From Isurus oxyrinchus (taxonomy: Eukaryota), in contig JANJGN010000121.1 of the NCBI GenBank assembly GCA_026770705.1, positions 310,001-374,000 of the forward strand: 64,000 nucleotides of DNA. Reading direction: 5' to 3'. This document shows positions 7,101-51,849 of this stretch, piece by piece. Each line of letters begins with the position of its first letter. The first letter of the stretch is position 1. Made by a program: the position numbers and the translations under genes. A model generated the notes under the pieces. It was not told where the DNA came from, did not search any database, and saw nothing but the letters and a program-made list of their open reading frames with translations.

Positions 7101-7242
7101 GAATGGGCTCCCAGTCTGCTGGAATGCCTCTCTGATACGAAGGTGATTCTAACCAGGACACTGACCAGTTTCATTACAACTTAACCCAATATCACACGTT
7201 ATTTGTCCGCACTGACTGACCAGATTGTTGCTGTACAAAGCT

Positions 7243-7382
7243 TCAAACAGTCTGTCGACTTCCTTTCACTGTTTGTCTCTCCCAGGCACAGACTCCAGCG
7301 ATAGTGATAACCACAGCCACAAGGAATATCACAGCTCGTATTCCCAGGATCAGGATCACGTGCAGAATCTCTCCTCCACTGT
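7243..7382 (-). CDS. Gene A TM/terminal exon SGGEILHVILILGIRAVIFLVAVVITIAGVCAWERQTVKGSRQTV*, with Arg in the TM and no Tyr motif
   Basis: ttctgtgtgttctctag acceptor, phase 1, hydrophobic run. CGA (Arg) at 7336-7338, TGA at 7243-7245. Confidence 0.8.
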
Positions 7383-9060
7383 CTAGAGAACACACAGAAA
7401 GAAATCATCACTGACTCTCCGCTTTCAATCTCTCACTCTGGCTGAACAATCAAGCTTCATATCACTGCAACATTTGCTGTAATATTGACCCATCCACTGG
7501 GATTCAATGTGGAATGAATGTTTTCATTGTAAACACTCGAAGAGTGGACAATTGGAACTTTCCCCTTAGCGTGGAACATTGGTGAGAATGGATCATTGTG
7601 CTGTTGGACTCCCTGTCCAATGTTTCTCTCCATCGCTGTGTACAGGATTGTGCTGTGGAAAATTCTGGAAACGTTTTGTGCAGGGTGGAAATTCATCTCG
7701 GACGTGTGTGCGAATCGGACAGGATCGAGATGGACTCCCCCACGGACTTACACCCCCCGCTTAATAAACAGTTCCAATCTTTACCCAGAGAGAGGGGAGA
7801 ATGTGGAACTCGCTCCCACAGGGAGTGGTTGAGGTGAACAGTATCGATGTATTTAAGGGGCAGGAGGGTCGGTAACCAGAGGGACACAGATTGACGAACC
7901 GGAGGGGGAGATGAGGAGAATTTGTTTTGACAGAGCGAGTTGTTGTGATCTGGAAGGTGCTGCCTGAAAGGGTGGTGGAAGCAGATTCAATAGGAACTTT
8001 CAAAAGGGAAATTGGATAAATACTTAAAGTAGGAAGATGGGGGCAAAGTGGAGTGGTGGTTAGTGGATCTGATTGGATAGAACATTGAAAGACCTGGCAC
8101 AGGCACAATGGACTGAATGGCCTCCTCCTGTGCTGTATCATTCTCCGTTTCCATGATCTCTCCCCCAGTCAGTAACGACTCCAGATCCCTCTTGAAGGCG
8201 ACAGAGAATCAGCAACCACCACACCCACTGACAACACATTGCCGAGGATCCCTACTCTCTGGGAAAAGATGAACTCCCCAACATCCAGCCTATTCCTGCT
8301 TCCCAGAGAGTGTAAACCCTTCAGGGAGGCGCTGAGGAAGTTTTCAATAAAATGACATCAAATCTACCGTTTGAGAAATAATTGAATTCCAATGAACTCA
8401 CAGCTTGTGTAGCAAACTGGGAAGTGGAGTTGCTTGAAAAGCTGGGAAACACAAGGATTAAGGGCTACAATGCCACCACTGGTGGGAGGCTGTAACTACA
8501 GCGTGACGTTTACATAGGCAATCCCCATTATGAACAAGGACATTGGACATCATGTGAAATATGGGCACTGGAAAGGTGAGAACATGATGTAAGCTTTTCA
8601 CCAACAGGAATTCTCCTCCTAAACCTCTCCACCTCTCTCTTACTCTCAAATACACAAAGAAAATCACACAAATCAGATAAGGAGGATTTGGGACCGGTGA
8701 TTGTTCGAAGGGTGAGCTTTCAGGAAGCTTCTTAAAGGGAGAGAGAGAGTTGGAGAGGCAGAGAGTATCTGTGAGAGTCTCTATGCATCTGAGTGTCTGT
8801 AATAGACTTTGTAATTTCCATATTCTTGCATAAATATGAATGGGAACACAAATCCCAGAATTCAGGCCAACTCTCCAGGGCAGTACTGAGGGAGGTCAGG
8901 TAGCCCACAGAGGAGTGTGTGTTAGTGTGTTTGTGTGTGAGTGTGTCTTTCTGTGTGGTCATATATGTGTGTCTGCATGTGTCTACTTAGATGTGTATGT
9001 TTGAGGGTGTTTGTGTAGTGTTCGAATCTGAGAGAGATGTTGAAGTCTGTGTACACTCAC

Positions 9061-9214
9061 GTTCCACAGTGATGGTTATGAATCCCTCCACTGCTCCATG
9101 TTCATTCTCTGCCACACACTGATAGTCTCCAGTGTCCCTGGATGTAACGTGAGGAATCACAAACCACAGCTCATTGTTGGAACTTGTTCTGTTCATTGGG
9201 ACATTAAGATGTCA
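9061..9214 (-). pseudogene. Gene A decapitated second C2 exon (3' half only, HLNVPMNRT...GFITITVE)
   Basis: Matches the 3' half of the gene C C2 repeats and keeps a C|gtgagt donor. The 5' half is replaced by unrelated sequence with an in-frame TGA at the junction. Confidence 0.8.
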
Positions 9215-9536
9215 GGGAGGGAATCAAGAACCCCGTTCACAGGATTACCAACAGAAAGTGAACAACAATTTATACTTAATGGGAAGAGAGTGCTGATTGG
9301 TTGGCAATTGGTCTCTGATAGGTGGCGGTGTTGCCATGGAGAATGGTGTGTGCGAGATGTAAAGTTTAGACAGCTTGTCTCTTTATTCAGCAATAATCAT
9401 ATAAAGATCAATTAACTTCTATCGACTTTGAAGCACTTAGAGAGGCCTTAGAATGTGGATACTGAGAATGGGCTGCACTGTCAGAGGGTCAGCGCTGAGG
9501 GAGTGCTGATGTGGAATGAATGGTGCATGTAATTAC

Positions 9537-9833
9537 CTTGCACAGTTAGTACGAGGGTCCGCTCCGATGAAACAGATGGATATCTCACTCTGCAGCTGAG
9601 AGTGTGTCCGTGGTGTTTGAGTGATGGGATCAGGGTCAGAACAGAAGTATAGGTCAGAGTGACACCATGCTGAGTTACAGTGTTTGAGACTGATCCAGGT
9701 ACGTCAGTGGGAGTGTCCCAGGTTAAGACAGGTGCTGCTGTTCCATTGCACGTTGTGTTGAAGGTGCAGCTCACATCCACACGCTTTCCTGCAATAATTT
9801 CAGCAGGGAATATCGTGGGTTTATCTGTGAAAT
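9537..9833 (-). CDS. Gene A C2-set Ig exon (Siglec domain 2) DFTDKPTIFPAEIIAGKRVDVSCTFNTTC...SCRVRYPSVSSERTLVLTVQ
   Basis: 297 nt, phase 1-1, tag/gtaatt boundaries. It has the extra B-C loop Cys used for the Siglec V-C2 interdomain disulfide. Confidence 0.9.
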
Positions 9834-10646
9834 CTAACAGACAGAGAATGGATCCTTTTAGAGAAATATAACATGAAGCATCAGTTCAAATAGAAAGCAC
9901 AGTCCCACAAGAGAAAGCACTTTTACAAGGATGATATCAGATCTGAGAGGATACAATGATCAGGAGAGAATTTCCTATTTTCAGACTTAGTGGAGTTTCT
10001 GTCACTCAGATGAATTCACTTCCACTTTGAGACAATTGAATTGACAATCCCAGGTGAGGGCGGGGGAGCAGCTCACAGTTCCTGACACAGTGGCTTGTTA
10101 CTTTCTCCGAAATCTGCCAGATTTAAATTCTATCCTGTCGCCAGCAGGAGAGAATCCATTTGAACCAATCACTGAACCGGCATCTAAAGCAGATGATCAG
10201 GTTATTGATCACATTGCTGTTTCTGGGAGCTTCCTGTGCACAAATTGGCTGCTGTGTGTCCTATATTACAACAAGGGCTACATTTCAAGAATTATTTCAA
10301 TGGTTGTGAATCCATTTGCGACATCCAGATGTGGTGAAAGGTGCTATAGAAATGCAAATCTTTCTTTTGTTGATATGTAAGAATTTTAAACAGGATTAGG
10401 TAGACTGATGGGAGTGGATAACCTGATAACATTGATGGACACAGTCAATACATTTAATCATTGATATTAAAGTGAGTATTAGAGGTTGTTTTAGGACTGA
10501 ACTGGAAGCTATTAGCAGGTTATTGAGAATCAGACAGTGTGTTATAATAAGCTGTGTTTTGTGTTAATATGTAAATGTCACAGTTCGTGTTATTTCCCAT
10601 TGAGTGTTGAATGTGAGTTGTTGAGTAATTATAACACAGCACTTAC

Positions 10647-11015
10647 CAGAAACGTGAAGCTGGGTTACAGGGTAATAGTTATGGCTCGGACCATTGTCAA
10701 ATTCTATTCTGAAAAAATAAGGTCCTGCATCTTCCCGTCTGATGTTGTTTATAATCAGGGAACAGTCGCCATCTTTCAGGTTTCCAGACAGCCGGGTCCG
10801 ATTGTGGAACCGTGGTAACTCGTGACTGTGATCCTTGGAGTGAAAGGCAATGGGAGCCCAGGGAATCTGTTCCTCATTATTAAACCAGACTCCACCTCGC
10901 GGTTGGTTTTCCAGACACGATGGATAACTGTAATGACATGGAATCTGTACACACGAACTTTCCTGTGCTGTCACCTCTCGTGGATTGTCACCTTTCCACT
11001 CTTGTGAGGGTTCAG
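10647..11015 (-). CDS. Gene A V-set exon V2 (essential Arg intact, extra Cys)
   Basis: 369 nt, phase 1-1. Siglec hallmarks: QEW, CVQIPC, DGDCSL, DAGPYFFRIE (no F-strand Cys, Arg AGA at 10708-10710). Confidence 0.92.
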
Positions 11016-11079
11016 CTGGGGAGAGAAATCTCAATATTGAACTCTGGATGGTTTGTGGATCCACTAGACTCAAAATTTA

Positions 11080-11900
11080 CTGATGAGGCTGAATTGGGGG
11101 GATGGTCAATACTGAGGAAAATGGCAACAAATTATTTTGGCAGGAAGAATAGAAAAACAGGATATTATTTAAATGGAGACAGGATGCAGAATGCAGTACA
11201 GAGGGATCTGGGTGTCCTTGTACATGAATCACAGAAAGTCAGCATTCAGGAACACCACGGAATGAGGAAGGCAAGTGGAATGTTGGCCTTTATTGCAAAG
11301 GGATGGAGTATAAAAGGAGGGAAGTCTTGCAACAGCTGCACAGGGTGAGATTGTATCAGGAGCAGTGTGTACAGTTCTAGTCTCCTTACTTAGGGAGGGA
11401 TAGACTTGCATTGAAGGCAGTTCAGAGAAGCTTCACTGGGCTGATTCCTGGGATTAAAGGGTTTGTCCTGTGAGGAAATGTTGAGCAGGTTGGGCCTGTA
11501 TCCATTGGAGTTTAGAAGAATGAGGGGTGAGCTTATTGAAACATATCCGATTCCGAGGGGGCTTGACAGGGTGGATGCTGGGAGGATGTTTCCCCCTCGT
11601 GGGGGAATCTAGAACCAGGGAGCACAGTTTCGGAATGAGGGCTCTCCCATTTAAGACTGAGATGAGGAGGAATTTCCTCTCTCAGAGGGGCGCTAGCCTG
11701 TGGAATTCTCTTCCCCAGAGAGCAGTGGAGGCTGGGCCATTGAATAGACTCAAGGCTGAGTGAGGCAGGTTTTTGATCGACAAGGGAGTCAAGGGTTTGG
11801 GGAACAGGCAGGAAAATGGAGTTAAGGCCACAACCAGATCAGTGAGAGCAGGCTGGAGGGGCCGAATGGCCTGCTCCTGTCCCTATTTCTTATGTTCCTA
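11080..11900 (+). mobile_element. CR1 LINE fragment
   Basis: YYLNGDRMQNAVQRDLGVLVHESQKV and RRNFLSQR segments, followed by a CR1-like 3' tail. Confidence 0.85.
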
Positions 11901-11989
11901 CATTCTTACCTTCTTAAAATATTAAAGCTGCAGAATAAACATGCAAGTGACTGACCCGCTCGACCCACCTTCCATCAGTGGCTGGAGGA

Positions 11990-13110
11990 GGTTACACAGA
12001 TAGGGAGGTTTGTGGGGGCTGTAGGAGGTAACAGAGATAGGGAGGGCTGTAGATACTGGAGGAGGTTACGCAGATAGGGAGGGTGGTAGGACCTGGAGGA
12101 GGTTGCGGAGATAGGGAGGGCTGTAGGGATTTGAGGAGTTTATGGAGATGGGGAGCGTGTAGGGACTGGAGGAGGCTGCAAGGGCAGAGAGGGTTTTAGG
12201 GGCAGGAGGAGTTTACAGGGATAGGAAGAGTTGTAGGGGCTGGACGGATTGCAGAGGTAGGGAGGGTTGGAAAGGCTGGTGGAGGTTTCAGAGGTAGGGA
12301 AGGTTGCAGGGACTGGAGGAGTTTACAGAGATGGGGGAGTTTTTGGGGCAGGATGGGGTTACAGAGATAGGGAGGGTTGTAGGGGCAGGACGAGGTTACA
12401 TAGATATGGAGTGTGGCTGGGGCTGAGGGAGGCTACAGAGATAGGGAGGGTTATAATGGCTGGAGGAGGTTACAGAGATAATGGAAGCTTTTAGGGACTG
12501 GAGGAGGTTACAGAGATAGGGAGGGTTGTAGTGGGCTGGATGAGGTGACAGAAATATGAAGGGTTGTAAGAGATGGAGCAGCTTACAGAGATTGGGAGAG
12601 GTATTCGGTCTGGAGGAGGTTGCAGAGATAGGGGAGGTTGTTAGGACTGAAGGAGGCTACAAATATCGCGAGGGTTATCAGGGCTTGAGGAGGTTAAAGA
12701 GATAGGGAGGGGTGTTGGGTCCGGAGGAGTTTGCAGTGATAGGATTGGTTTTCGGGATTGGAAGAAGGTACTGAGATAGGAGGGTTGTAGAGACTGGAGG
12801 AGTCTCCTGAGATAGGGAGGGTTGTAGGGACTGGAGGAGGCTCCTGAGATAGGGAGGGTTGTAGGGACTGGAGGAGGCTCCTGAGATAGGGAGGGTTGTA
12901 GGGACTGGAAGAGGCTCCTGAGATAGGGAGGGTTGTAGGGACTGGAGGAGGCTCCTGAAATAGGGAGGGTTGTAGGGACTGGAGGAGGCTCCTGAGATAG
13001 GGAGGGTTGTAGGGACTGGAGGAGGCTCCTGAAATAGGGAGGGTTGTAGGGACTGGAGGAGGCTCCTGAGATAGGGAGGGTTGTAGGGACAGGAGGAGAC
13101 TCCTGAGATA
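11990..13110. repeat. About 31-32 nt purine-rich minisatellite (GGGAGGGTTGTAGGGACTGGAGGAGGCTCCTGAGATA)
   Basis: Near-perfect units at 12770-13110, degenerate units leftward. Confidence 0.9.
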
Positions 13111-13139
13111 GGGAATGTTGCCGTGGATGAAGGAAGAGG

Positions 13140-14100
13140 AGGAGATTACTGTAATAGGGAGGAAAAATATTCAAAAATTGTGGCATTGAGACTTTGCTTG
13201 ACCAGGAACCAGTCTCGGGACTTGGTGTGAGTAAGGACGTGGTCAGCAGTTTTGGATGGCCTCAAGTTTATGGAGTGTAGAGCGTGTGTTGGAACAGTCG
13301 AGACTGGAGGTAATGAAGGCGTGGATGAGGGTTTCAGCAGCAGATGAGCTGAGACAGGGTGACATCGTACAATGTTTCGGAGGTGGAAATAGACGGTGTT
13401 AGTGAGGGCGCAGATATGAGGCCGGAAGCTCATCTCAGGATCAAATGGGACAACAAAGCTGTGAACAGATTGGCTTCAATCTCAGAGAGCTGCCAGGGAG
13501 AGGAATGGAGTTGGTAGCGAGGGAACAGAGTTTGGAATGGGGAATGAAGACAATGGCTTCAGTCTTTCCAATATTTAATTGGAGGGAATTTCTGCCCATC
13601 CAGTACTGGATGTCGGATAAGCAGCCTGATAATTTAGCAGCAGTGGCGGAGTCGAGAGAGGTGGTGGTGAGGTAGAGCTGGGGATCCTCAGTGGACAGGT
13701 GAAAACTAACACTGTTCAGATGATGCTGCAAAGCCATTGCAAGTGATTCTCTGGCTACGATGAGATGGATAAGAATGGAGCCAGGGGAGAGCAGTCCCAC
13801 CCAGCTGGACGACAGTGGACAGGTGTTGGAGGAGGATGGTGTGGTCGAGTGTGTCAAAGGCTGCAGACAGATCGAGAAGGACGAGGAGGGAAAGTTGACC
13901 TTTGTCACAGTCACACAGGATGCCATTTGTGACCTTGATAGGAGCTGTTTCAGCACAGTGGCTGGGGTGGGAACCTGATTGGAGGGATTCAAACATGGAG
14001 TTCCGGGAAAGATGGGAACGGATTCGGGAGATGGAAACACGTTCAAGGACTTTGGAGGGGAAAGAGAGGCTGGAGATGGGACGGGGGTTTACACGGACAG
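13140..14100 (-). mobile_element. L2-clade LINE RT fragment
   Basis: ORF 13706-14140 contains RPISSLSFPSKVLER...LVLLDLSAAFDTLDHTILL. A second frame contains LQLNIGKTEAIVF. Confidence 0.85.
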
Positions 14101-14360
14101 TGTGAGGGGTGAAAGGTGTAGTGGGGAGGAGATACTTCACTCAGGGGGGAGGTGTCATCACCCCTCAGCTCGGTTTACGTTACAGCTATGATGTGGATTC
14201 AATCACACACAATAAGCTCATGGATCTGGGAGCAGAAATAGACAAATCATTAAAAATAGTGACGCTGGTTAACATGGCCAAAAAACAAGCAAATCAAACA
14301 CTATTATTTCCCATTGAGTGTTGGATGTGAATTGTTGAGTAATTATAACACAGCACTTAC

Positions 14361-14738
14361 CAGAAACCTGAAGCTGGGTTACAGGGTAATAGTTATGGCT
14401 TGGACGATTGCCAAATTTTATCGTGAAAAAATAAGGTCCTGCATCTTCCCGTCTGATGTTGTTTATAATCAGGGAACAGTCGCCATCTTTCAGGTCTCCA
14501 GACAGCCGGGTCCGATGGCGGAACCGTGGTAACTCGTGACTGTGACCCTTGGAGTGAAAGGCTATAGACCATTTAGACCATTTGTTCCGTATGTAGCTTC
14601 TCATTTTCCAGATTCCGACATGTGGTTTCTTTACCAAATCTGATGGATAACTGTAATGACATGGAATCTGTACACACGAACCTTTCTGCGCTGTCACCTC
14701 TCGTGGAGTGTCACCTTTCCACTCTTGTGACAATCCAA
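14361..14738 (-). CDS. Gene A V-set exon V1 (essential Arg replaced by Thr, YFFTIKF)
   Basis: 378 nt, phase 1-1, tttctctccccag/gtaagt boundaries, open frame, Siglec Cys pattern. ACG at 14422-14424. Confidence 0.9.
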
Positions 14739-15054
14739 CTGGGGAGAGAAATATCAATATTTAACTCTGGATGTTTTGTTGATCCACAAGATTCATTATC
14801 CACCCCCTCCATCACTCGGGCACAGTGGCTGCAGTGTGGACCATCTACAGGACACACAATGAACTCCACAAGGTATCACACCGGATGGAAGAGAATCCTG
14901 GACACAAAAGCGGAAAAGTTCATTCTACATTGGTTCATGGTCCTCAGGACCCTGTTTGTGCAGAAGTCTGCTCTCCAACAGAACTGAAGTTGGGGACAAT
15001 GCATTTGGAATTCCACTGTCCTGGGCATTGGGTTAACTTGCTGATTTTGTTTTG

Positions 15055-19148: not shown

Positions 19149-19188
19149 CTTGGAGAAGTGACAGGAGGAAGTAGGATTTCCCGATCAT
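19149..19188 (-). CDS. Gene A signal-peptide exon MIGKSYFLLSLLQ
   Basis: ATG at 19188 and G|gtaata donor. Phase 1 joins V1 to give ...LLQVGLS-QEW. Confidence 0.85.
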
Positions 19189-26890: not shown

Positions 26891-27258
26891 CAGAAACATG
26901 AAGCTGGGTTACAGGGTAATAGTTATGGCTCCGACCATTGTCAAATTCTATTCTGAAAAAAAAAGTCCTGCATCTCCCCATCTGATGTTGTTTATAATCA
27001 GAGAACAGTCGCCATCTTTCAGGTCTCCAGACAGCCGGGTCCGATGGTGGAACCGTGATAACTCGTGACTGTGATGCTTGGAGTGAAAGGCTATAGACAA
27101 TGTATTCCATTTGTCCCTCCTCATATTCCAGATTCCGACACGTGTTTTCTCTAACAAATGTGATGGGTAATTGTAATGACATGGAATCTGTACACATGAA
27201 CCTTTCTGTGCTGTCACCTCTCGTGGAGTGTTACTTTCCCATTCTTGTGACAGTCCAA
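26891..27258 (-). pseudogene. Gene B V-set exon with 1-nt frameshift in a T9 run
   Basis: 368 nt, not a multiple of 3. GGAC-T9-CAGA here versus GGACCTTATTTTTTCAGA in the intact copies. The domain is split over ORFs 26948-27277 and 26799-27197. Confidence 0.8.
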
Positions 27259-32470: not shown

Positions 32471-33455
32471 CTTGTTCCCTGTCCTTCTCAAAGATCCATT
32501 CCTGCAGCGGGAGCCTGAAGAGTTACTGATAAGAGATTTAATTTATCGGATTGTAGAATGATCCAGAACTGAAGGAAGCCATTTGGCCCATCGAGCCTGT
32601 GCTGGGCCTTTGAAAGATCTGTCCAATTCGTCCCACTCTCACCTCTGCTCTCTCCTCCACAGCCCTGCAAAATGTCCCCTTCAAGTATTTATCCAGTTCC
32701 CCTTCTGAAAGTTCCTGTTGAATCTGCTGCCACCGCCCTTTCAGGCAGTGAGTCAATGGTCTCTCTCTGAGCTGCAAAGTGATAAGTTTCAATGAAATAT
32801 AAACTCTGCAGCAGATCAGAAACAATCATGATAACTCAGAATATTTGACAGTTTTACATACAGACAGCTTTGCCTCCCTTCTCTCTATCAGTTATCTTGC
32901 TATCTTATCGAATTTTCTAGCATGGTGAGAATGGACAGGAAGTGTGACGCTGAACTGCCTGTCTAATCTAAGAGCTTCTGTGTTGTCTTCATGGGAAGTT
33001 CTGATGAAAATCAGCAAGAGAGAAAAATTTCAGGGCATTGATATCGGAGTGCTTGCATCAGGATAGACTTCATCCCCCAGTTTTTATCCCTGCTTCTCTA
33101 TTCAGCCGATCGCTCCCCTGTCACTCGCTGACCTACACTGGCTCCCAGTCCAGCAATGACTCAATTTTCAAAATCTCTTCATTGATTCCTTATCCCTCCA
33201 TCCTCCCTCTCTACTCCCTATCACTGCCACCTCCTCCAGCCCTGAAACCCTTTGAGGTCTCAGCGGTCCTGCAGTTCTGCTGTCAGACAGGGAGTCAGTG
33301 TATATCAGTGAGCACAGGGGTGATGGGTGAATGGGACTTGGTGTGAGTTTGTACACTGGCTCACTGCTGAATCAGTTCCCTATCAGAGCTCAGTAAGAAT
33401 GTTCTTTTACAAAGACTATTAGCCATAAGTCTGTCCAAGCTGACGATGATATTAC

Positions 33456-33495
33456 CTTGGAGAAGTGACAGGAGGAAGTAAGATTTCCCGATCAT
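33456..33495 (-). CDS. Gene B proximal signal-peptide exon MIGKSYFLLSLLQ
   Basis: ATG at 33495 and G|gtaata donor. UTR exon 33946-34063 and GAGGAAGT at ~34078 lie upstream. Confidence 0.75.
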
Positions 33496-35590
33496 TGTCC
33501 ACTCCCAAATATTCCTTTAGCTTCTGACTCTTAAACTCTGAAAGAGAAAGGAGTTAATGAGACCTCACCTCTTGTCCGACAGCTCTCGAGAGATCAGAAC
33601 TGCTTTTAGACAATGTCTTCACAGACTAATTTGGTTCTCTGTGGGATGATAGGTGCTCTGCAGAGAGTGAAAAAGCTTTAAAAAAATAAATCAATGAAGG
33701 ACTTGCATTTCTATAGCACCTTTCACCACCTCAGGATGTCCCAAAGCTCATACCCCTGATATTCCCTCATCCTTTGAGCTAGAAAGATATTCTGTACAAC
33801 AGAACTGAGCCTCACACCCTGATCTCAATGATCAGTAGAAATATTTCAAAGGCATCAATCATTGGAATCTGTCTTTATAAAGTCACAACATCAATAAAGG
33901 ACGGTGTTGGTCGTGGAAGTGAATTCCAATCATTCCGTTACTTACCCAGAACCTGTCCGACTGCTCGCCTGGGGAGGAACTGCCCACACGCTCTGCTTGG
34001 GCTGAATGACCTCTTCCTGTGCTGCTCCCTCTGTGTGTTTAATTAGACAGGGTGGATGTGTCACTTTGAGACAAAATGAGGAAGTTGGATCAAAGTGACA
34101 GAGCAGCTCATGTTTTGAGATGTTGGTGAAATGTTAACCCTTTGTGTCCTGACCTTGTGGTGATATTTCTGCTCACAGGTGGACAGTCATTGACCAGGAA
34201 TTTCTCCTGTGGGTCAGTGGGTTTCACAGCCAAATTCAGGGGGTCAGAATGTTGTGGGGTTCAAGACGCGATTCAGGGGACGTCTGCCCCACAGAGTAGA
34301 CTGAAACTCCCCAGTGTCAGTACTGAGGGAGTGCTGCACTGTCGGATGGTCATTACTGAGCGAGTGTTGCACTATTGTAAGGTCAGTACTGAGGGAGATC
34401 TCCACTGTTTGAGGGTCAGTACTGAGGGAGTGCTGCACTGTCAGAGGGACATTAATCAGGGAGTGCTGCAATGTTGGAGGATCAGTACCGAGGGAGTGCT
34501 GCACTGTTGGAGGGTCAGTATTAAGGTGCTGATTTACAAGACAGGACAATGGATTAGGAGCCCTCAGAACTCCCCCCATTATCACTGTCATGAATCACTA
34601 ATTAGCCTAACATTCCTGTCTGCTCTTCAACACGGCTGATTGGTTAATCTGATTCAATATCATTGGTGCACTTTGTATGTTCATTGTCTAAGGAATCTCT
34701 TTGGATCCTCATTGTTTAAGGAATCTCTTTGGATCCTCATTGTCTAATGAATCTCTTTGGATCCTCATTGTCTGAGGAATCTCTTTGGATCCTCATTGTC
34801 TAAGGGATTATTTCTGATCCAAACCCCATATTGTTGTATTGTTGATTCCGATGCAGCATTGTAGACTGACTTGTCCCCAAGCTCAGCACTGACCCTACTC
34901 CAGCAGACACTGTGACACACACTAACAAAGTGCCTCTAGCCTGAGCTCTGCATGTGTCGAGAGAAAGACAAATATACAAACTGTATATTGACCCATTTAC
35001 ACACGGACAGCTTTACCTTCCTTCTCTCTTTCAGTTATCTTGCTCCCTTATTGAAGTATCTAGCAAGGTGAGAATGGACAGGAAGTGTGACACTGAACAG
35101 CCTGTCTATTCTAGGAGCTGCTGTGTTGTCTTCATGGGAAATTCTGATTAAAATCAGGAAAAGACACAAATTTCATTCCATTGCTATCGGCATCCAAGCA
35201 TCAGGATAGACTTCATCCCCCAGTATTTATCACTGTTTCTCAACTCAACACCTCACACCCTCTGCCACTCGCTGACCTGCACTGGCTCCCAGACCAGCAG
35301 AGCCTCGAGTTTAAGACTCTCATCCTCAATTTCCATTCCCTCCATTCCTCTTCTCCAATCACTTTCTCCTCCAACCATGCAAACCTCAAAGTCCTCTGCT
35401 ATCCTCCAATTCTGCTGTCAGACAGGGAGTCAGTGTATATCAGTGAGCACAGGGGTGATTGTTGAATGGGACTTGGTGTGAGATTGTACACTGGCTCACT
35501 GCTGAATCTGTTACCAGTCACAGCTCAATAAGAATGATCTTTTACAAAGACTATTCACCATAAATCTATCCGAGCTGACGATGATATTAC

Positions 35591-35630
35591 CTTGGAGAAG
35601 TGACAGGAGGAAGTAAGATTTCCTGATCAT
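35591..35630 (-). CDS. Gene B distal (second) signal-peptide exon MIRKSYFLLSLLQ
   Basis: ATG at 35630 with an intact donor. It has its own UTR exon 36074-36191 and PU.1-like site 36201-36214. Confidence 0.7.
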
Positions 35631-36319
35631 TGTCAACTCCCAGATATTTCATTGGTTCTCAAGCTGTGAAAGAGAAATGAGTTAACGAGACCTCACCTCT
35701 TGTCCGACACCTCTCGAGAGATCAGAACCACTTTTAGACAATGTCTTCACAGAATAATTTCATTCTCTGTGGGATGATAGTTGCTCTGCAGAGAGTTACA
35801 AGGCTTTAAGAAAGTAAAACAATGAAGGAGTTGCATTTCTATGTCGCCTTTCACCTGCTCAGGACATCCCAAAGCTCATGTCCCTGCTCTTCCCTCATCC
35901 CTTGAGCTAGAAAGATGTTCTGTACAACAGACTTGAGCCTCACACCCAGATCTCAATAATCAGTAGAAATCTTTCAAAGGCATCAATCATTGGAATCTGT
36001 CTTTATAAAGTCACAACATCAACAAAGGACGGTGTTGGTCGTGGAAGTGAATTCCAATCGTTCCGTTACTTACCCAGGACCTGTCCGACTGCTCGCCTGG
36101 GGAGGAACTGCCCACACGCTCTGCTTGGGCTGAATGACCTCTTCCTGTGCTGCTCCCTCTGTGTGTTTAATTAGAAAGGGTTGATGTGTCACTGTGAGAC
36201 AAAATGAGGAAGTGGTTAGTACCAAGTTAGAAAGCATCTCTTTGCCTCGCACAGTTAGAAAACTGTTAACCCTTTGTGTGCCAAGAATGTGGCTGAAGGG
36301 CCATCGACTGTTCACATGC

Positions 36320-42060: not shown

Positions 42061-42099
42061 AGCTAATAACACGAGAACGTTCAATTCTGTGTAACTCAT

Positions 42100-42381
42100 G
42101 TTCCACAGTGATGGTTATAAATCCCTCCACTGCTCCATGTTCATTCTCTGCCGCACACTGATAGTCTCCAGTGTCCCTGGATGTAACGTGAGGAATCACC
42201 AACCACAGCTCATTGTTGGAACTTGTTCTGTTCATTGGGACATTAAGATGTCACCACGTCAGGTTAGAAGCTGGGAAGCTTTCGACAGAGCAGATTATCA
42301 CTGCAGCATTTCCCTCAATTATATTGATCGATGAAGCGTTAATCATATCAAGAGAAGTAATTGATGGGTTCCGTGGTGCAT
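42100..42381 (-). pseudogene. Gene C C2 repeat 5: in-frame TGA and dead donor
   Basis: 282 nt. TGG TGA CAT at 42251-42253. Donor reads C|atgagt instead of gtgagt. Confidence 0.85.
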
Positions 42382-43352
42382 CTAAATACAAATAAAGGTT
42401 TCATTGTCAGCAAACACAGTGCACAGCAAGACTCCATGATACATCTCTCTCTATTTGGTGTCTATGTGCATTTCAAGAGTTCTTTCCTGTTTTAAGTTCC
42501 TGTGTCAACTTTTATAATGGTCACTGCCGGTGTTTTTCTTTTTGCACATTCATGGGAAGTGGATGTATCTATCTAGACCAGCATTTATTACCCATCCCTA
42601 ATTGCCCTTGAGGAGGTGGTGGTGAGTTTTTCACACCCATAGAATTCCCAGCCTCTGACCTGCTCCTGTAGCCACAGTATTTATGGCCGGTCCAGTTAGT
42701 AGTTTGGTTAACATCCCCCAGGATGTTGATTGTGGGGGATTCAGTGATAGTAAACTCACTGAACATCAAGGGGAGATGGTTAGATTCTCTCTTGTTGGAC
42801 ATGATCACTGCCTGGTAATTGTGATGCATTAATTGTCTCAGCCCAAGCTGAGTGTTATTCAGCTCTTGCTGCATGTGGATATGTAAACTGTCACGCTGTA
42901 ATTACAGCCATCTACCAGAGGAGACACTGTCGGTCTAGAAGAAAAGAAAATGTCTTTCACATCATCAGGATGTTCACAGGGATTTGACAGTGGAGGAATT
43001 GCTTTAGAATAATGGGGTATTGAGTGATAAACCTACAATTCTCTGTGCAGGGGGCTGCTCGTCCAATACAGGGTCTTGTTCAGCTGATGTCGTCAGTGTT
43101 TCAGAGCAGAATCTGGAGCAACACTCCAGTGCAGCACAGGGAGAACAGACAACACACACATGTCTGTGTGTGTGTGTGAGCAAGCACACGTGTGATTTTG
43201 TATGTATGCTTCTGTGTGTGAGCATGCAGGCGTGCACACCTGTGCACCTGTGGGATTCCACATGAATGCTTGTTTGTGTGCACGTGTGTATGAGTGTGTA
43301 TGAGTGTGTCTGTGTATATGTGAGAGTAATGTTGAAGCTTGTGTTAACTCAC

Positions 43353-43634
43353 GTTCCACAGTGATGGTTATGGACCCCTCTACTGCTCCATGTTCATTCT
43401 CTGCCACACACTGATAGTCTCCAGTGTCCCTGGATGTAACGTGAGGAATCACCAACCACAGCTCATTGTTGGAACTTGTTCTGTTCATTTGGACATTAAG
43501 ATGTCACCACGTCAGGTTAGAAGCTGGGAAGCTCTCGACAGAGCAGATTATCACTGCAGAATTCCCCTCAATTATATTGATCGATGAAGCGTTAATCATA
43601 TCAAGAGAATTAATTGAGAGATTCAATGGTGCAT
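43353..43634 (-). pseudogene. Gene C C2 repeat 4: in-frame TGA with intact splice sites
   Basis: 282 nt. TGA at 43504-43506 replaces Arg (CGA/CGC in the intact copies). Confidence 0.8.
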
Positions 43635-44279
43635 CTAAATATATGGAAAGATTTTAAAGTGAGCAACATAGTGCACAAGACGCCATGCATCATCTCTCTG
43701 TATCTGATGTCCGAATGCATTTCCAGATAACTTCCCTCAGGATAAGGTCTTATGGCACATTTATAATTGACACTGCTTATGTAAACTGTCACACTGCAGT
43801 TGCATTCTCCCACCAGTAGAGGTGTTGCCCATCTAGAATGAAAGAAGTTTGCTTTCACGTCCTCAGGATTTCGCAAAGGGCTTGACAGGCAATGTTTGAT
43901 TGAGGGAGCACTGAGGGGTAAATCTACAATTCTCTGTTCAGGAGGTTGCTCATCCAATTCAGGGTCTTGCTGATCTGGAGTTTACCGTCCTTCAACACAG
44001 AATCGGAGCTGATACCGAGACTCCAGTGCAGCACTGAGAACTCTCGCGTGTGTATGTGTGTGTTTGTGTTACTGCACATGTGAGTGTGTTTGTGTGTGTA
44101 TGCACACATGTAGCTGTGTGTGCGCATGCACGCGTGTCTGTGTGTCTACGTCTGTACATGAGTGAGAGTACGTGTATGTGTGTGTCTATGTGTGGGCATG
44201 AATATGTGTGTGTGTTTGAGATGGGTGTGTATTTTCCTGTGTATGTGTTTGTACGTGTATGACTGTCTGTGTATACTTA

Positions 44280-44469
44280 NNNNNNNNNNNNNNNNNNNNN
44301 NNNNNNNNNNNNNNNNNNNNNNNNNNNNNNNNNNNNNNNNNNNNNNNNNNNNNNNNNNNNNNNNNNNNNNNNNNNNNNNNNNNNNNNNNNNNNNNNNNNN
44401 NNNNNNNNNNNNNNNNNNNNNNNNNNNNNNNNNNNNNNNNNNNNNNNNNNNNNNNNNNNNNNNNNNNNN
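44280..44469. other. N gap; others at 46288-46447, 63303-63572 and 63604-63793
   Basis: Runs of n next to TG/CA repeats or minisatellite. The 63 kb gaps could hide gene D exons. Confidence 0.95.
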
Positions 44470-44477
44470 TAACTCAC

Positions 44478-44759
44478 ATTCCACAGTGATGGTTATGAAC
44501 CCCTCCACTGCTCCATGTTCATTCTCTGCCACACACTGATAGTCTCCAGTGTCCCTGGATGTAACGTGAGGAATCACCAACCACAGCTCATTGTTGGAAC
44601 TTGTTCTGTTCATTGGGACATTAAGATGTCGCCACGTCAGGTTAGAAGCTGGGAAGCTCTCGACAGAGCAGATTATCACTGCAGAATTCCCCTCAATTAT
44701 ATTGATCGATGAAGCGTTAATCATATCTGGAGAAGTAATTGAGAGATTCTGTGGAGCAT
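44478..44759 (-). CDS. Gene C C2 repeat 3 (intact)
   Basis: 282 nt, phase 1-1. DAPQN...CSVESFPASNLTWRH...DTGDYQCVAENEHG. Confidence 0.85.
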
Positions 44760-45507
44760 CTAAAAATAAATAAAGATTTTAATGTGAGCAAGCATAGTGC
44801 ACAGCAAGACTCCATGCATCATCTCTCTGTATCTGATGTTGGAATGCATTTCCAGGTACCTTCCCTCAGGAAAAAGTACTGTCACATTTATAATGGGCAC
44901 TTCCTATGTAAACTGTCACACTGCAGGGGCATTCTCCCACCAGTAGAGTTGCTGTCTATCTAGAATGAAAGAAACATCCTTTAACACTCTCAAGATGCCC
45001 CCAAGGGATTGAAAGCCCGTGAATTGTATTTGATTGATGGAGCACTGAGGGGTAAATCTACAATTCTCTGTTCAGGAAGTTGCTCATCCAATTCAGGGTC
45101 TTGCTGATCTGGAGTTTACCTTCCTTCAACACAGAATCAGAGCTGATACCAAGACTCCAGTGCGGCACTGAGAGAGGAGAGGGATCTCACACTTGTGTGT
45201 GTGTGTGTGTATTTCTGCACAAGTGAGTTTGTATTTGTGTGTATGCGCGTGTCTGTCTGCGCATGTGTGGGCACGCGTGTGTATGTGGGTCTTGTGTGTA
45301 CATCTGTGCTTGAGTGAGTGTGTGTGTATATGTGTGTCTACGTGTGCGCATGAATGATTGTATGTGTGAGTTGAGTTTGTGTGTGTTTCTGTGTATGTGT
45401 TTGAACGTATGTTTGTGTGTAAGCGTGCTTGTTTGTGTCTACACATGAGTGTTTTTGCATGTGTGTGTGTGTTTGTGTGTGTGATGTTGAAGTCTGTGTA
45501 CACTCAC

Positions 45508-45789
45508 ATTCCACAGTGATGGTTATGAACCCTTCCACTGCTCCATGTTCATTCTCTGCCACACACTGATAGTCTCCAGTGTCCCTGGATGTAACGTGAG
45601 GAATCACCAACCACAGCTCATTGTTGGAACTTGTTCTGTTCATTGGGACATTAAGATGGCGCCACGTCAGGTTAGAAGCTGGGAAGCTCTCGACAGAGCA
45701 GATTATCACTGCAGAATTCCCCTCAATTATATTGATCGATGAAGCATTAATCATACCAAGAGAAATAATTGAGACATTCTGTGGAGCAT
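45508..45789 (-). CDS. Gene C C2 repeat 2 (intact)
   Basis: 282 nt, phase 1-1, open frame in ORF 45338-45799. Confidence 0.85.
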
Positions 45790-46455
45790 CTAAAAACATA
45801 TAAAGATTTTAAAGTGAGCAAATATAGTGCACAGCAAGACTCCATGCATCATGTTTCTGTATCTGATGTCTGAATGCATTTCCAGGTACCTTCTCTCAGG
45901 ATAAGAACTTATTTCACATTTACAATGGGCACTGCCTATGTAAACTGTCACACTGCAGTTACATTCTCCCACCAGTGGAGGTGTCCATCTAGAATGCAGG
46001 AAACTCCCTTTCAGATCCTCAGGATGTCCCCAAGGGCTTCAAAGGCAATGAATTGTATTTGACCAATGGCGCACTGAGGGGTAAATCTACAATTCACTGT
46101 TCAGGAGGTTGCTCCAGCCAGTTCAGTGTCTTGATGATCGGGAGTTTACCTTTCATCAACAAAGATTCGGAGCTGATACTGAGACTCCAGTGCAGCCCTG
46201 AGAGAGGAGAGGGAACCCACATGTTTTTGTGTGTGTATGTGTGTGTTGGCTTGTGTGTGTATGTTTCTGTAAAATAAGGATCTGTGTNNNNNNNNNNNNN
46301 NNNNNNNNNNNNNNNNNNNNNNNNNNNNNNNNNNNNNNNNNNNNNNNNNNNNNNNNNNNNNNNNNNNNNNNNNNNNNNNNNNNNNNNNNNNNNNNNNNNN
46401 NNNNNNNNNNNNNNNNNNNNNNNNNNNNNNNNNNNNNNNNNNNNNNNTAACTCAC

Positions 46456-46548
46456 ATTCCACAGTGATGGTTATGAGCCCCTCAATTATATTGATCGATG
46501 AAGCATTAATCATATCAAGCGAAGTAAATGAGAGATTCTGTGGTGCAT
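46456..46548 (-). CDS. Gene C C2 repeat 1 collapsed to a 31-aa mini-exon DAPQNLSFTSLDMINASSINIIEGLITITVE
   Basis: 93 nt with both splice sites. A 189-nt in-frame deletion lies between two GAGGGG copies. It abuts an N gap. Confidence 0.55.
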
Positions 46549-46800
46549 CTAAGAACAATTAAAGATTTCATTGTGAACAAGACTCAGTACTGAGGGAGTG
46601 CTGCACTGTCAGAGGATCAGTACTGAGGGAGTGCTGCAGTGTTGGAGAGTCAGTGTTCAGGGACTGCTGCAGTGTCAGAGGTGAATTTGTATCAGTTAAA
46701 GACTATTGATTTGTTGCTAAACACAATGCAGTTGTGGGATCTTGCAATATACTATGTAGAGCTTTCTAGCTAATGTAGATGGAAGGGTGTCCGTTCTTAC

Positions 46801-47955: not shown

Positions 47956-48321
47956 CAGACACGTGAAGCTGGGTTACAGGGTAATAGTTATGGCTCGGAC
48001 CATTGTCAAATTCTATTCTGAAAAAATAAGGTCCTGCATCTTCCCGTCTGATGTTGTTTATAATCAGGGAACAGTCGCCATCTTTCAGGTCTCCAGACAG
48101 CCGGGTCCGATGGTGGAACCGTGGTAACTCGTGACTGTGATCCTTGGAGTGAAAGGCTATAGACGATGTTCTCCATTCCTCATTATTAAACCAGATTCCA
48201 ACTCGTGGTTGGTTTTCCAAATGTGATGGATAACTGTAATGACATGGAATCTGTGCACACGAACTTTCCTGCGCTGTCACCTCTCGTGGAGTGTCACCTT
48301 TCCACTCTTGTGACATTCCAA
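47956..48321 (-). CDS. Gene C V-set sialic-acid-binding-type exon (Arg intact)
   Basis: 366 nt, phase 1-1. CAQIPC, DGDCSL, DAGPYFFRIE (AGA at 48017-48019). Confidence 0.92.
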
Positions 48322-51809: not shown

Positions 51810-51849
51810 CTTGAAGAAGTGACAGGAGGAAGTAAGATTTACCGATCAT
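51810..51849 (-). CDS. Gene C signal-peptide exon MIGKSYFLLSLLQ
   Basis: ATG at 51849 and G|gtaata donor. UTR exon 52300-52417 and AAAATGAGGAAGT at 52427-52440 lie upstream. Confidence 0.85.

Follow-up and report, generated by a model that had tools for sequence, protein, structure and literature searches.

In gene A, a Siglec-like gene with two V-set domains, the second of these domains (V2) carries an additional cysteine seven residues after its B-strand cysteine (B+7). Judged from sequence comparison, a B+7 cysteine is a conserved, position-specific feature of the multi-V Siglec-like receptors predicted in elasmobranchs. The best explanation for its presence, with a probability of about 0.6, is a disulfide bond with the interdomain cysteine of the preceding V domain (V1). 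The same linkage had been put forward in the original prediction, where it was seen as a novelty that compensates, in gene A, for the orphaned cysteine of V1. The linkage is favored by a census of positions, by domain topology and by the predicted V1–V2 geometry; the "novel" and "compensatory in gene A" parts of the proposal had to be given up.

The window, i.e., the whole 64,000-nt stretch of DNA that was analyzed, contains on its minus strand a tandem cluster of Siglec-like genes with four V-set exons. The exons relevant here are the following:

51849..51810, minus strand: leader exon of gene C (MIGKSYFLLSLLQ)
48321..47956, minus strand: sole V exon of gene C (V_C)
27258..26891, minus strand: V exon of gene B (V_B), frameshifted by a 1-nt deletion in a T-run
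~25114 and ~47044, minus strand: further C2-set exons with SCTFNTTC
19188..19149, minus strand: leader exon of gene A (MIGKSYFLLSLLQ), with a phase-1 donor
14738..14361, minus strand: V1 exon of gene A (V1_A), 378 nt, phase 1-1, intact
11072..14304, without strand: V1–V2 intron region, 3.2 kb, with LINE/RT-like fragments and a 37-nt tandem array
11015..10647, minus strand: V2 exon of gene A (V2_A), 369 nt, Siglec-type V-set, phase 1-1, intact
9833..9522, minus strand: C2-set exon of gene A, 312 nt, its start set by the RNA junction at 9833
7382..7241, minus strand: transmembrane exon of gene A, encoding a span that contains an Arg, then a short tail (…ILGIRAVIFLV…RQTV*)

All four V exons have the same splice signals (...CCCCAG at the acceptor, GTAAGT at the donor, phase 1-1). 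Gene A has two consecutive in-frame Siglec-type V exons behind a single leader, all in phase 1, and no leader-like sequence was detected in the stretch between V1_A and V2_A. Its leader-V1-V2-C2 frame is open over 366 codons with no stop and continues into the transmembrane exon. The predicted product of gene A is a Siglec-like receptor composed of a leader, V1, V2, C2, an Arg-containing transmembrane segment, and a short tail. Additional leader copies are found at ~33.5 kb, 35.6 kb, and 3.3 kb; two leader-exon copies (~35541-35695 and 33406-33567) lie 2 kb apart upstream of gene B, and one of these is presumably a duplication relic. In the sole V exon of gene B, the T-run is 1 nt shorter than in the other copies (GGACTTTTTTTTTCAG vs. 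GGACCTTATTTTTTCAG; window 26948-26971), and the resulting frameshift, located just before the Arg motif, means either that the exon is pseudogenised or that the homopolymer was misassembled.

The plus-strand triplet ACA at 10915-10917 reads TGT (Cys) on the minus strand. The codons on which the argument depends are:

10917..10915, minus strand: additional Cys codon TGT, V2 residue 33, in the B-C loop, B-strand Cys +7
10953..10951, minus strand: V2 interdomain Cys, five residues before the B-strand Cys (B-5); its expected partner is the C2 B-C loop Cys
10938..10936, minus strand: V2 B-strand Cys (Cys26)
10764..10762, minus strand: V2 E-strand Cys (Cys84)
10710..10708, minus strand: V2 putative sialic-acid Arg, in YFFRIE
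14676..14674, minus strand: V1 interdomain Cys (B-5), proposed partner of the additional V2 Cys
14640..14638, minus strand: Asp at the V1 +7 position
14424..14422, minus strand: V1 Thr replacing the essential Arg, in YFFTIK
9768..9766, minus strand: C2 B-strand Cys, in SC-TFNTT-C
9750..9748, minus strand: canonical interdomain partner Cys of C2 (B+6)

The cysteines of V2 stand in the context ...SSC-VQIP-C-HYSYPS-C-LEN. At the +7 codon, V2 has TCG TGT, V1_A has TCA GAT (Asp), and both V_B and V_C have TCA CAT (His). This re-reading of the codons agrees with the original observation that the V2 cysteine, in IPC-HYSYPS-C, is replaced by Asp or His in the other three V exons; the coordinates also confirm the spacing reported at the time, with the V2 cysteine at B+7 and the C2 interdomain cysteine at B+6 in SC-TFNTT-C. 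The C2 pair aligns with the CD33 pair in ...TCSVSWAC..., so that both of the V-to-C2 interdomain cysteines are present and aligned to those of CD33, and a bond between them is predicted. V2 itself is a V-set domain of the Siglec fold, with Cys26 and Cys84 for the intrasheet B–E disulfide; its best sequence matches in the PDB are Siglec-5, -7, -8, and CD33 (E-values down to 4e-14), and its candidate sialic-acid Arg aligns with the FFR of Siglec-5 and Siglec-8. V1, with a Thr in its place, lacks the strand-F Arg. In V1_A, the changes cluster around the Arg site (FFTIKFGNR vs. FFRIEFDNG), and the C-C' loop is longer and basic. Compared with V_C, dN/dS is 0.88 for V1_A and 0.40 for V2_A. From its sequence, the outer V domain looks released from sialic-acid binding.

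Independent reads cover the additional codon. Contigs from the public runs X1, X3, and X11, which represent two organisms, span it with no difference listed at that position, and run X19 has only shallow depth there; an assembly or sequencing error at this codon was rejected because the contigs of the three covering runs agree. A GT..AG junction from 10647 to 9833, joining V2 to C2, is present in X1, X3, and X11, which indicates that a V2-type exon with the cysteine is present in RNA, with the predicted splicing. Among the junctions listed (15 of 30), none joins V1 to V2, and one in X11 runs from 14361 to 9833, i.e., from V1 to C2 with V2 skipped. In X1 and X3, a V1-type 5' end (…GTTGGACTG followed by TCACAAGAG) either terminates the V2-like contigs or is missing from them. 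There are also fixed differences from the window that are common to all runs and, taken together with these V1-type 5' ends, they imply that several contigs probably derive from paralogs or from another species. At most 0.46 of the words of the V1_A exon are present in any run; X1 and X3 cover the V2-type exon, joined to C2, but not V1_A-specific sequence. A search with the V2 exon among proteins of 0.55-1.75x its length, for fragments spanning the V1–V2 boundary, returned three matches, none of them informative. V1 and V2 are predicted to be spliced together in gene A.

The strongest evidence comes from other elasmobranchs. A full-library phmmer search with the V2 exon, combined with a word-indexed search, collected ~290 proteins. 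Nearly all of the close matches were NCBI shark and ray models, from Carcharodon, Cetorhinus, Mustelus, two species of Scyliorhinus, Chiloscyllium, Hemiscyllium, Rhincodon, two species of Mobula, Hypanus, and Hemitrygon. The census was made on the unique V domains of Siglec-like proteins predicted for 13 species of sharks and rays; 42 of the proteins have two to four consecutive Siglec-type V domains. Of the 47 non-first V domains, 34 have a cysteine at B+7; the counts are 0 of 29 for first and 5 of 118 for single V domains, which corresponds to 72% of non-first V domains and 3% of those that are first or single. Four or more cysteines are found in 44/47, 7/31, and 20/110 domains of these three classes, respectively. 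Fisher's test for the B+7 cysteine vs. position gives p = 6e-22, a value that treats the domains as unrelated and does not constitute independent evidence. The first census comprised 176 complete V domains, and in every one of them the donor column, B-5, is a cysteine. With Asp in V1 and Cys in V2, gene A follows the same pattern of a first V without, and a non-first V with, the cysteine. The co-occurrence of this cysteine with the two-V arrangement in other sharks, which the original prediction had proposed as a check, is thus strongly positive, in three shark orders and in rays. By the same count, the cysteine of V2 is neither novel nor a compensation acquired recently in gene A; it is old and conserved in V domains that are not the first.

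Listed in the order of the V domains, the residues at B+7 are H-C in most of the lamniform, Mustelus, and orectolobiform models, H-C-C or N-C-C in Mustelus and S. torazame, Y-C-C-C in P0151 of S. canicula, and R-K/T-C-H/Q in rays. The ray d2 and d4 domains have a different additional cysteine, in the C-C' loop (W-x-KDEC); in the four-V ray models P0003, P0157, P0277, and P0278, every non-first V still has four cysteines. Four non-first V domains of sharks lack the B+7 cysteine, namely the d2 domains of P0001, P0156, P0158, and P0170. That of P0170 has a cysteine in the F-G loop instead, that of P0156 has an additional cysteine elsewhere, and that of P0001 has none; P0158 d2 may be part of a fused model, because it starts like a leader-proximal exon. 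In the extended set, V2 of the white-shark model P0267 has Tyr at B-5 (GSYVQIPC) and retains the B+7 cysteine; going by sequence, the partner cysteine of its C2 domain would be left unpaired.

The occurrence of the cysteine in single-V paralogs, which had been named in advance as evidence against the V1–V2 linkage, is mostly not seen. None of the 113 complete single-V domains of the first census has it; five of the 118 in the extended set do, all of them white-shark models (P0257, P0259, P0261, P0263, and P0270) in which a Cys-bearing V directly follows the leader. At least one of these, P0270, stems from a two-V gene, the one behind P0160, as an isoform that leaves out V1. In products of this leader-then-Cys-V type, the B+7 cysteine would be unpaired.

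Such a correlation with position could also arise by descent alone. The B+7 cysteine would then be a neutral marker of an ancestral "V2-type" exon, with phylogenetic inertia creating the link to position and no structural role for the residue. Many V2 exons do share the start AEPSQEW, and related species dominate the census. When the trait column is taken out and a maximum-likelihood tree of the V domains is built, those with the cysteine nevertheless form no clade, and at least 10 changes of cysteine state and at least 11 changes of position are required. The identity of Cys-bearing V domains is 81-92% with first or single V domains of their own lineage that lack the cysteine, and only 72-82% with each other across orders. 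This higher identity within lineages than across orders indicates that the domain backbone is homogenised within lineages and that the cysteine follows position. The V domain of gene C points in the same direction, as it resembles V2 on both sides of the +7 codon but has a V1-type His patch there. Moreover, a neutral, unpaired surface cysteine is unlikely to have been held across sharks and rays at ~50% domain identity. The phylogenetically controlled test is underpowered: on supported branches there are four independent pairs, of which two to three are concordant and none is discordant, too few for significance. Altogether, the B+7 cysteine probably tracks position in these sequences, shared descent alone not being enough, and we consider a neutral marker very unlikely.

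Structure prediction is consistent with a bond between V1 and V2. Two AlphaFold2 models, of white-shark P0163 (V1–V2–C2; pLDDT 88, pTM 0.67) and P0256 (V1–V2; pLDDT 87, pTM 0.73), were compared with solved chains. The V2–C2 part of P0163 fits the V–C2 unit of CD33 with Z 20.6 and an rmsd of 2.4 Å over 206 residues, and the V–C2 units of Siglec-10 and Siglec-5 with 2.7-3.4 Å; the comparison with the sialoadhesin V domain gave an rmsd of 1.8 Å and Z 18. For the V1–V2 unit of P0256, the highest Z was obtained with MAG Ig1-3 (Z 17.1-19.0, rmsd 8.2-8.6 Å), and the fit to whole, disulfide-linked V–C2 units of Siglec-10, CD33, and Siglec-5 had Z 14.6-15.4 and an rmsd of 4.5-5.5 Å over 199-209 residues, compared with 12-17 Å for two-domain Fab and butyrophilin chains. 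This fit to Siglec V–C2 units suggests that, in the model, V1 sits on V2 in an arrangement roughly like that of Siglec D1 on D2. In both models, the additional cysteine lies in a short turn just after strand B, like the partner cysteine of C2. The topology places the V1 cysteine in the A'-B turn, at the bottom of its domain, and the V2 cysteine in the B-C loop, at the top. A complex prediction with V1 and V2 as separate chains scored 0.03, which counts neither for nor against the bond. Pairing of the additional cysteine with V2's own B-5 cysteine was discarded, as the two are at opposite ends of strand B.

The V-to-C2 disulfide is established in Siglecs, for example between Cys46 and Cys172 of Siglec-6 (PMC10122656). 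In the arrangement that we favor, the B-C loop cysteine of V2 would be the lineage's standard acceptor in a V domain that lies behind another V, and would most likely bond with the A'-B-turn cysteine of V1 (14676..14674), while V2's own A'-B cysteine would still bond with the B-C loop cysteine of C2. The canonical Siglec D1–D2 staple would in this way be copied one domain further out; the cysteine count would be even (3+4+3), and a rigid V1–V2–C2 rod would result, in which the Arg-less V1 caps the Arg-bearing V2. A tentative extension, for which the odds appear close to balanced and slightly unfavorable, is that sharks and rays have rods of two to four V domains held by serial disulfides, each from the A'-B cysteine of domain n to the B-C cysteine of domain n+1. 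With a donor and an acceptor cysteine of its own in each insertable "inner V" exon, duplication or loss of an exon would lengthen or shorten the receptor with every cysteine staying paired, and an inner V that became first or single would lose its acceptor. To our knowledge, a modular disulfide daisy-chain of V-set domains is undescribed for the Siglecs of other vertebrates. A full-text search of the literature, the searchable part of which is limited, returned nothing about multi-V Siglecs in sharks or rays and nothing about the B+7 cysteine.

Two other readings accept the cysteine as real and give it a different fate. It may be unpaired within its own chain and form an intermolecular disulfide, either in a homodimer or with another chain, especially in products that have V2 without V1. 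Products of that kind are suggested by the white-shark models P0257, P0259, and P0263, in which the leader is followed by a Cys-bearing V, by P0270, which skips V1, and by the coverage of the V2-type exon in X1 and X3 described above. A missing contig is no proof, however, and V1 changes too quickly from one species to the next to be matched at 95%. In addition, a dimerising cysteine should be equally useful in single-V paralogs, yet it is absent from them beyond the five white-shark models, and from every first V. In proteins with three or four V domains, every inner V has the cysteine (as in Y-C-C-C of P0151), which serial intrachain staples fit better. An intermolecular bond is for these reasons unlikely. 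The other reading concerns V1: V1 and V2 of gene A could be mutually exclusive first Ig exons, or V1_A could be decaying, with the cysteine a leftover from a two-V ancestor. The absence of the essential Arg from V1_A, its faster evolution, and the V1-to-C2 junction of X11, with no V1-to-V2 counterpart among the junctions listed, would be expected in that case. Against it, V1_A retains an open frame, both splice sites, all three structural cysteines, and a compatible phase, V2 has no separate leader, and the closest white-shark models (P0256, P0258, and P0262) contain both V domains; we regard this reading as quite unlikely. A disulfide between V1 and V2 accordingly remains the preferred interpretation.

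Compared with the canonical D1–D2 disulfide of Siglecs (structures of CD33, MAG, Siglec-5, and Siglec-10; also Siglec-6), the proposed V1–V2 bond would use the same donor, the cysteine five residues before the V-set B-strand cysteine, and an acceptor that likewise follows strand B of the next domain directly (B+6 in C2, B+7 here). It would differ in that the acceptor domain is V-set rather than C2-set, in that the staple would repeat serially in proteins with two to four V domains, and in that the bond is here a predicted one. Primate Siglec-12 has a tandem V–V–C2 organization like that of gene A, and it is because of this tandem-V likeness that many shark models are named "Siglec-12" by NCBI. 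The N-terminal V of human Siglec-XII has also lost its essential Arg (R122C), the corresponding change in V1 here being Arg to Thr. The shark genes are nonetheless not Siglec-12 orthologs; they belong to lineage-specific expansions in which exons were often duplicated and converted.

Among cartilaginous fish, the white-shark models XP_041037143.1 (P0256), P0258, and P0262 have the same layout as gene A, in which leader, V1, V2, and C2 precede an Arg-containing transmembrane segment and a short tail. P0256 is 95% identical to gene A in V2, 91% in C2, and 93% in the transmembrane segment, and its V2 shares the YSYPSCLENQPRGG motif. The basking-shark models P0161 and P0002 also have a V1–V2 tandem, but P0161 ends after C2, and P0002 has a long tail and no C2. 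In white and basking sharks, V1 is only 69-78% identical to that of gene A, a figure that comes from automatic models of other species, and several V2 domains start with VGLSQEW and not with AEPSQEW. Outside this group, the tandem-V Siglec models of turtles (P0057 and P0090) and Xenopus P0096 keep the V1 cysteine and have no additional cysteine in V2. V2 of Rhinopithecus Siglec-12 (P0098) has a Tyr at B+7 and an additional cysteine in the C-C' region; Xenopus P0042 has an additional cysteine near the N-terminus of each V, and P0038 of the arowana Scleropages has one at B+4 of V2. The additional cysteines of P0098, P0042, and P0038 may be independent solutions to the orphan-cysteine problem. 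Since the tandem-V Siglecs of these other vertebrates lack a B+7 cysteine, an orphan V1 cysteine must there be tolerated or dealt with differently.

Should the V1–V2 bond exist, cartilaginous fish would have reused the Siglec D1–D2 staple between V domains, as a portable module, and this would explain how V domains can be stacked, up to four in catshark and ray models, without free cysteines. At the functional level, the sequence suggests a layout in which an Arg-less outer V is fixed atop an Arg-bearing inner V, in a receptor with a transmembrane Arg of the activating type. In practical terms, a V exon with the YSYPSC motif can be assigned to a place behind another V, a rule that helps in judging automatic models, which are often fused or truncated in tandem clusters. 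The finding is of moderate interest to specialists of Siglec and Ig-domain evolution and does not represent a new kind of system.

The two-V arrangement of gene A contains a duplicated V-exon unit of ~490 bp, the copies of which (14304-14795 and 10590-11072) are 86-87% identical. Collinearity with gene C is seen in the intron downstream of V2_A, and with both gene B and gene C in the flanks of V1_A. V_C combines V1-like and V2-like patches in a mosaic: its upstream intron and 5' end are V1-type, and its body and downstream intron are V2-type, with V1-type patches at the +7 codon and in the C-C' loop. Despite 89% identity to V2 and a downstream intron in common with it, V_C has His at +7, where the patch TCA CAT TTG is V1-type; four of the ~22 substitutions between V2_A and V_C fall within these 10 nt. 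This patchwork suggests short-tract gene conversion among the V exons.

Between the two V exons of gene A, the 37-nt array (11982-13114) comprises ~31 copies with 77% matches, and LINE/RT-like ORF fragments flank it on both sides (11134-11900 and 13441-14140). The k-mer depth of the array is very high in all runs, which identifies it as a genome-wide repeat. A second type of C2 exon (…NASSINIIEGNSAVIICSVESFPASNLTWRH…) occurs in at least four near-identical copies in gene C (window 42073-46558), beside N gaps, the closest at 44280-44469 and 46288-46447. These copies could reflect an assembly problem or an alternatively used exon. Gene A also has a copy of this second type, at 9026-9214, which the white-shark ortholog model P0256 does not use.
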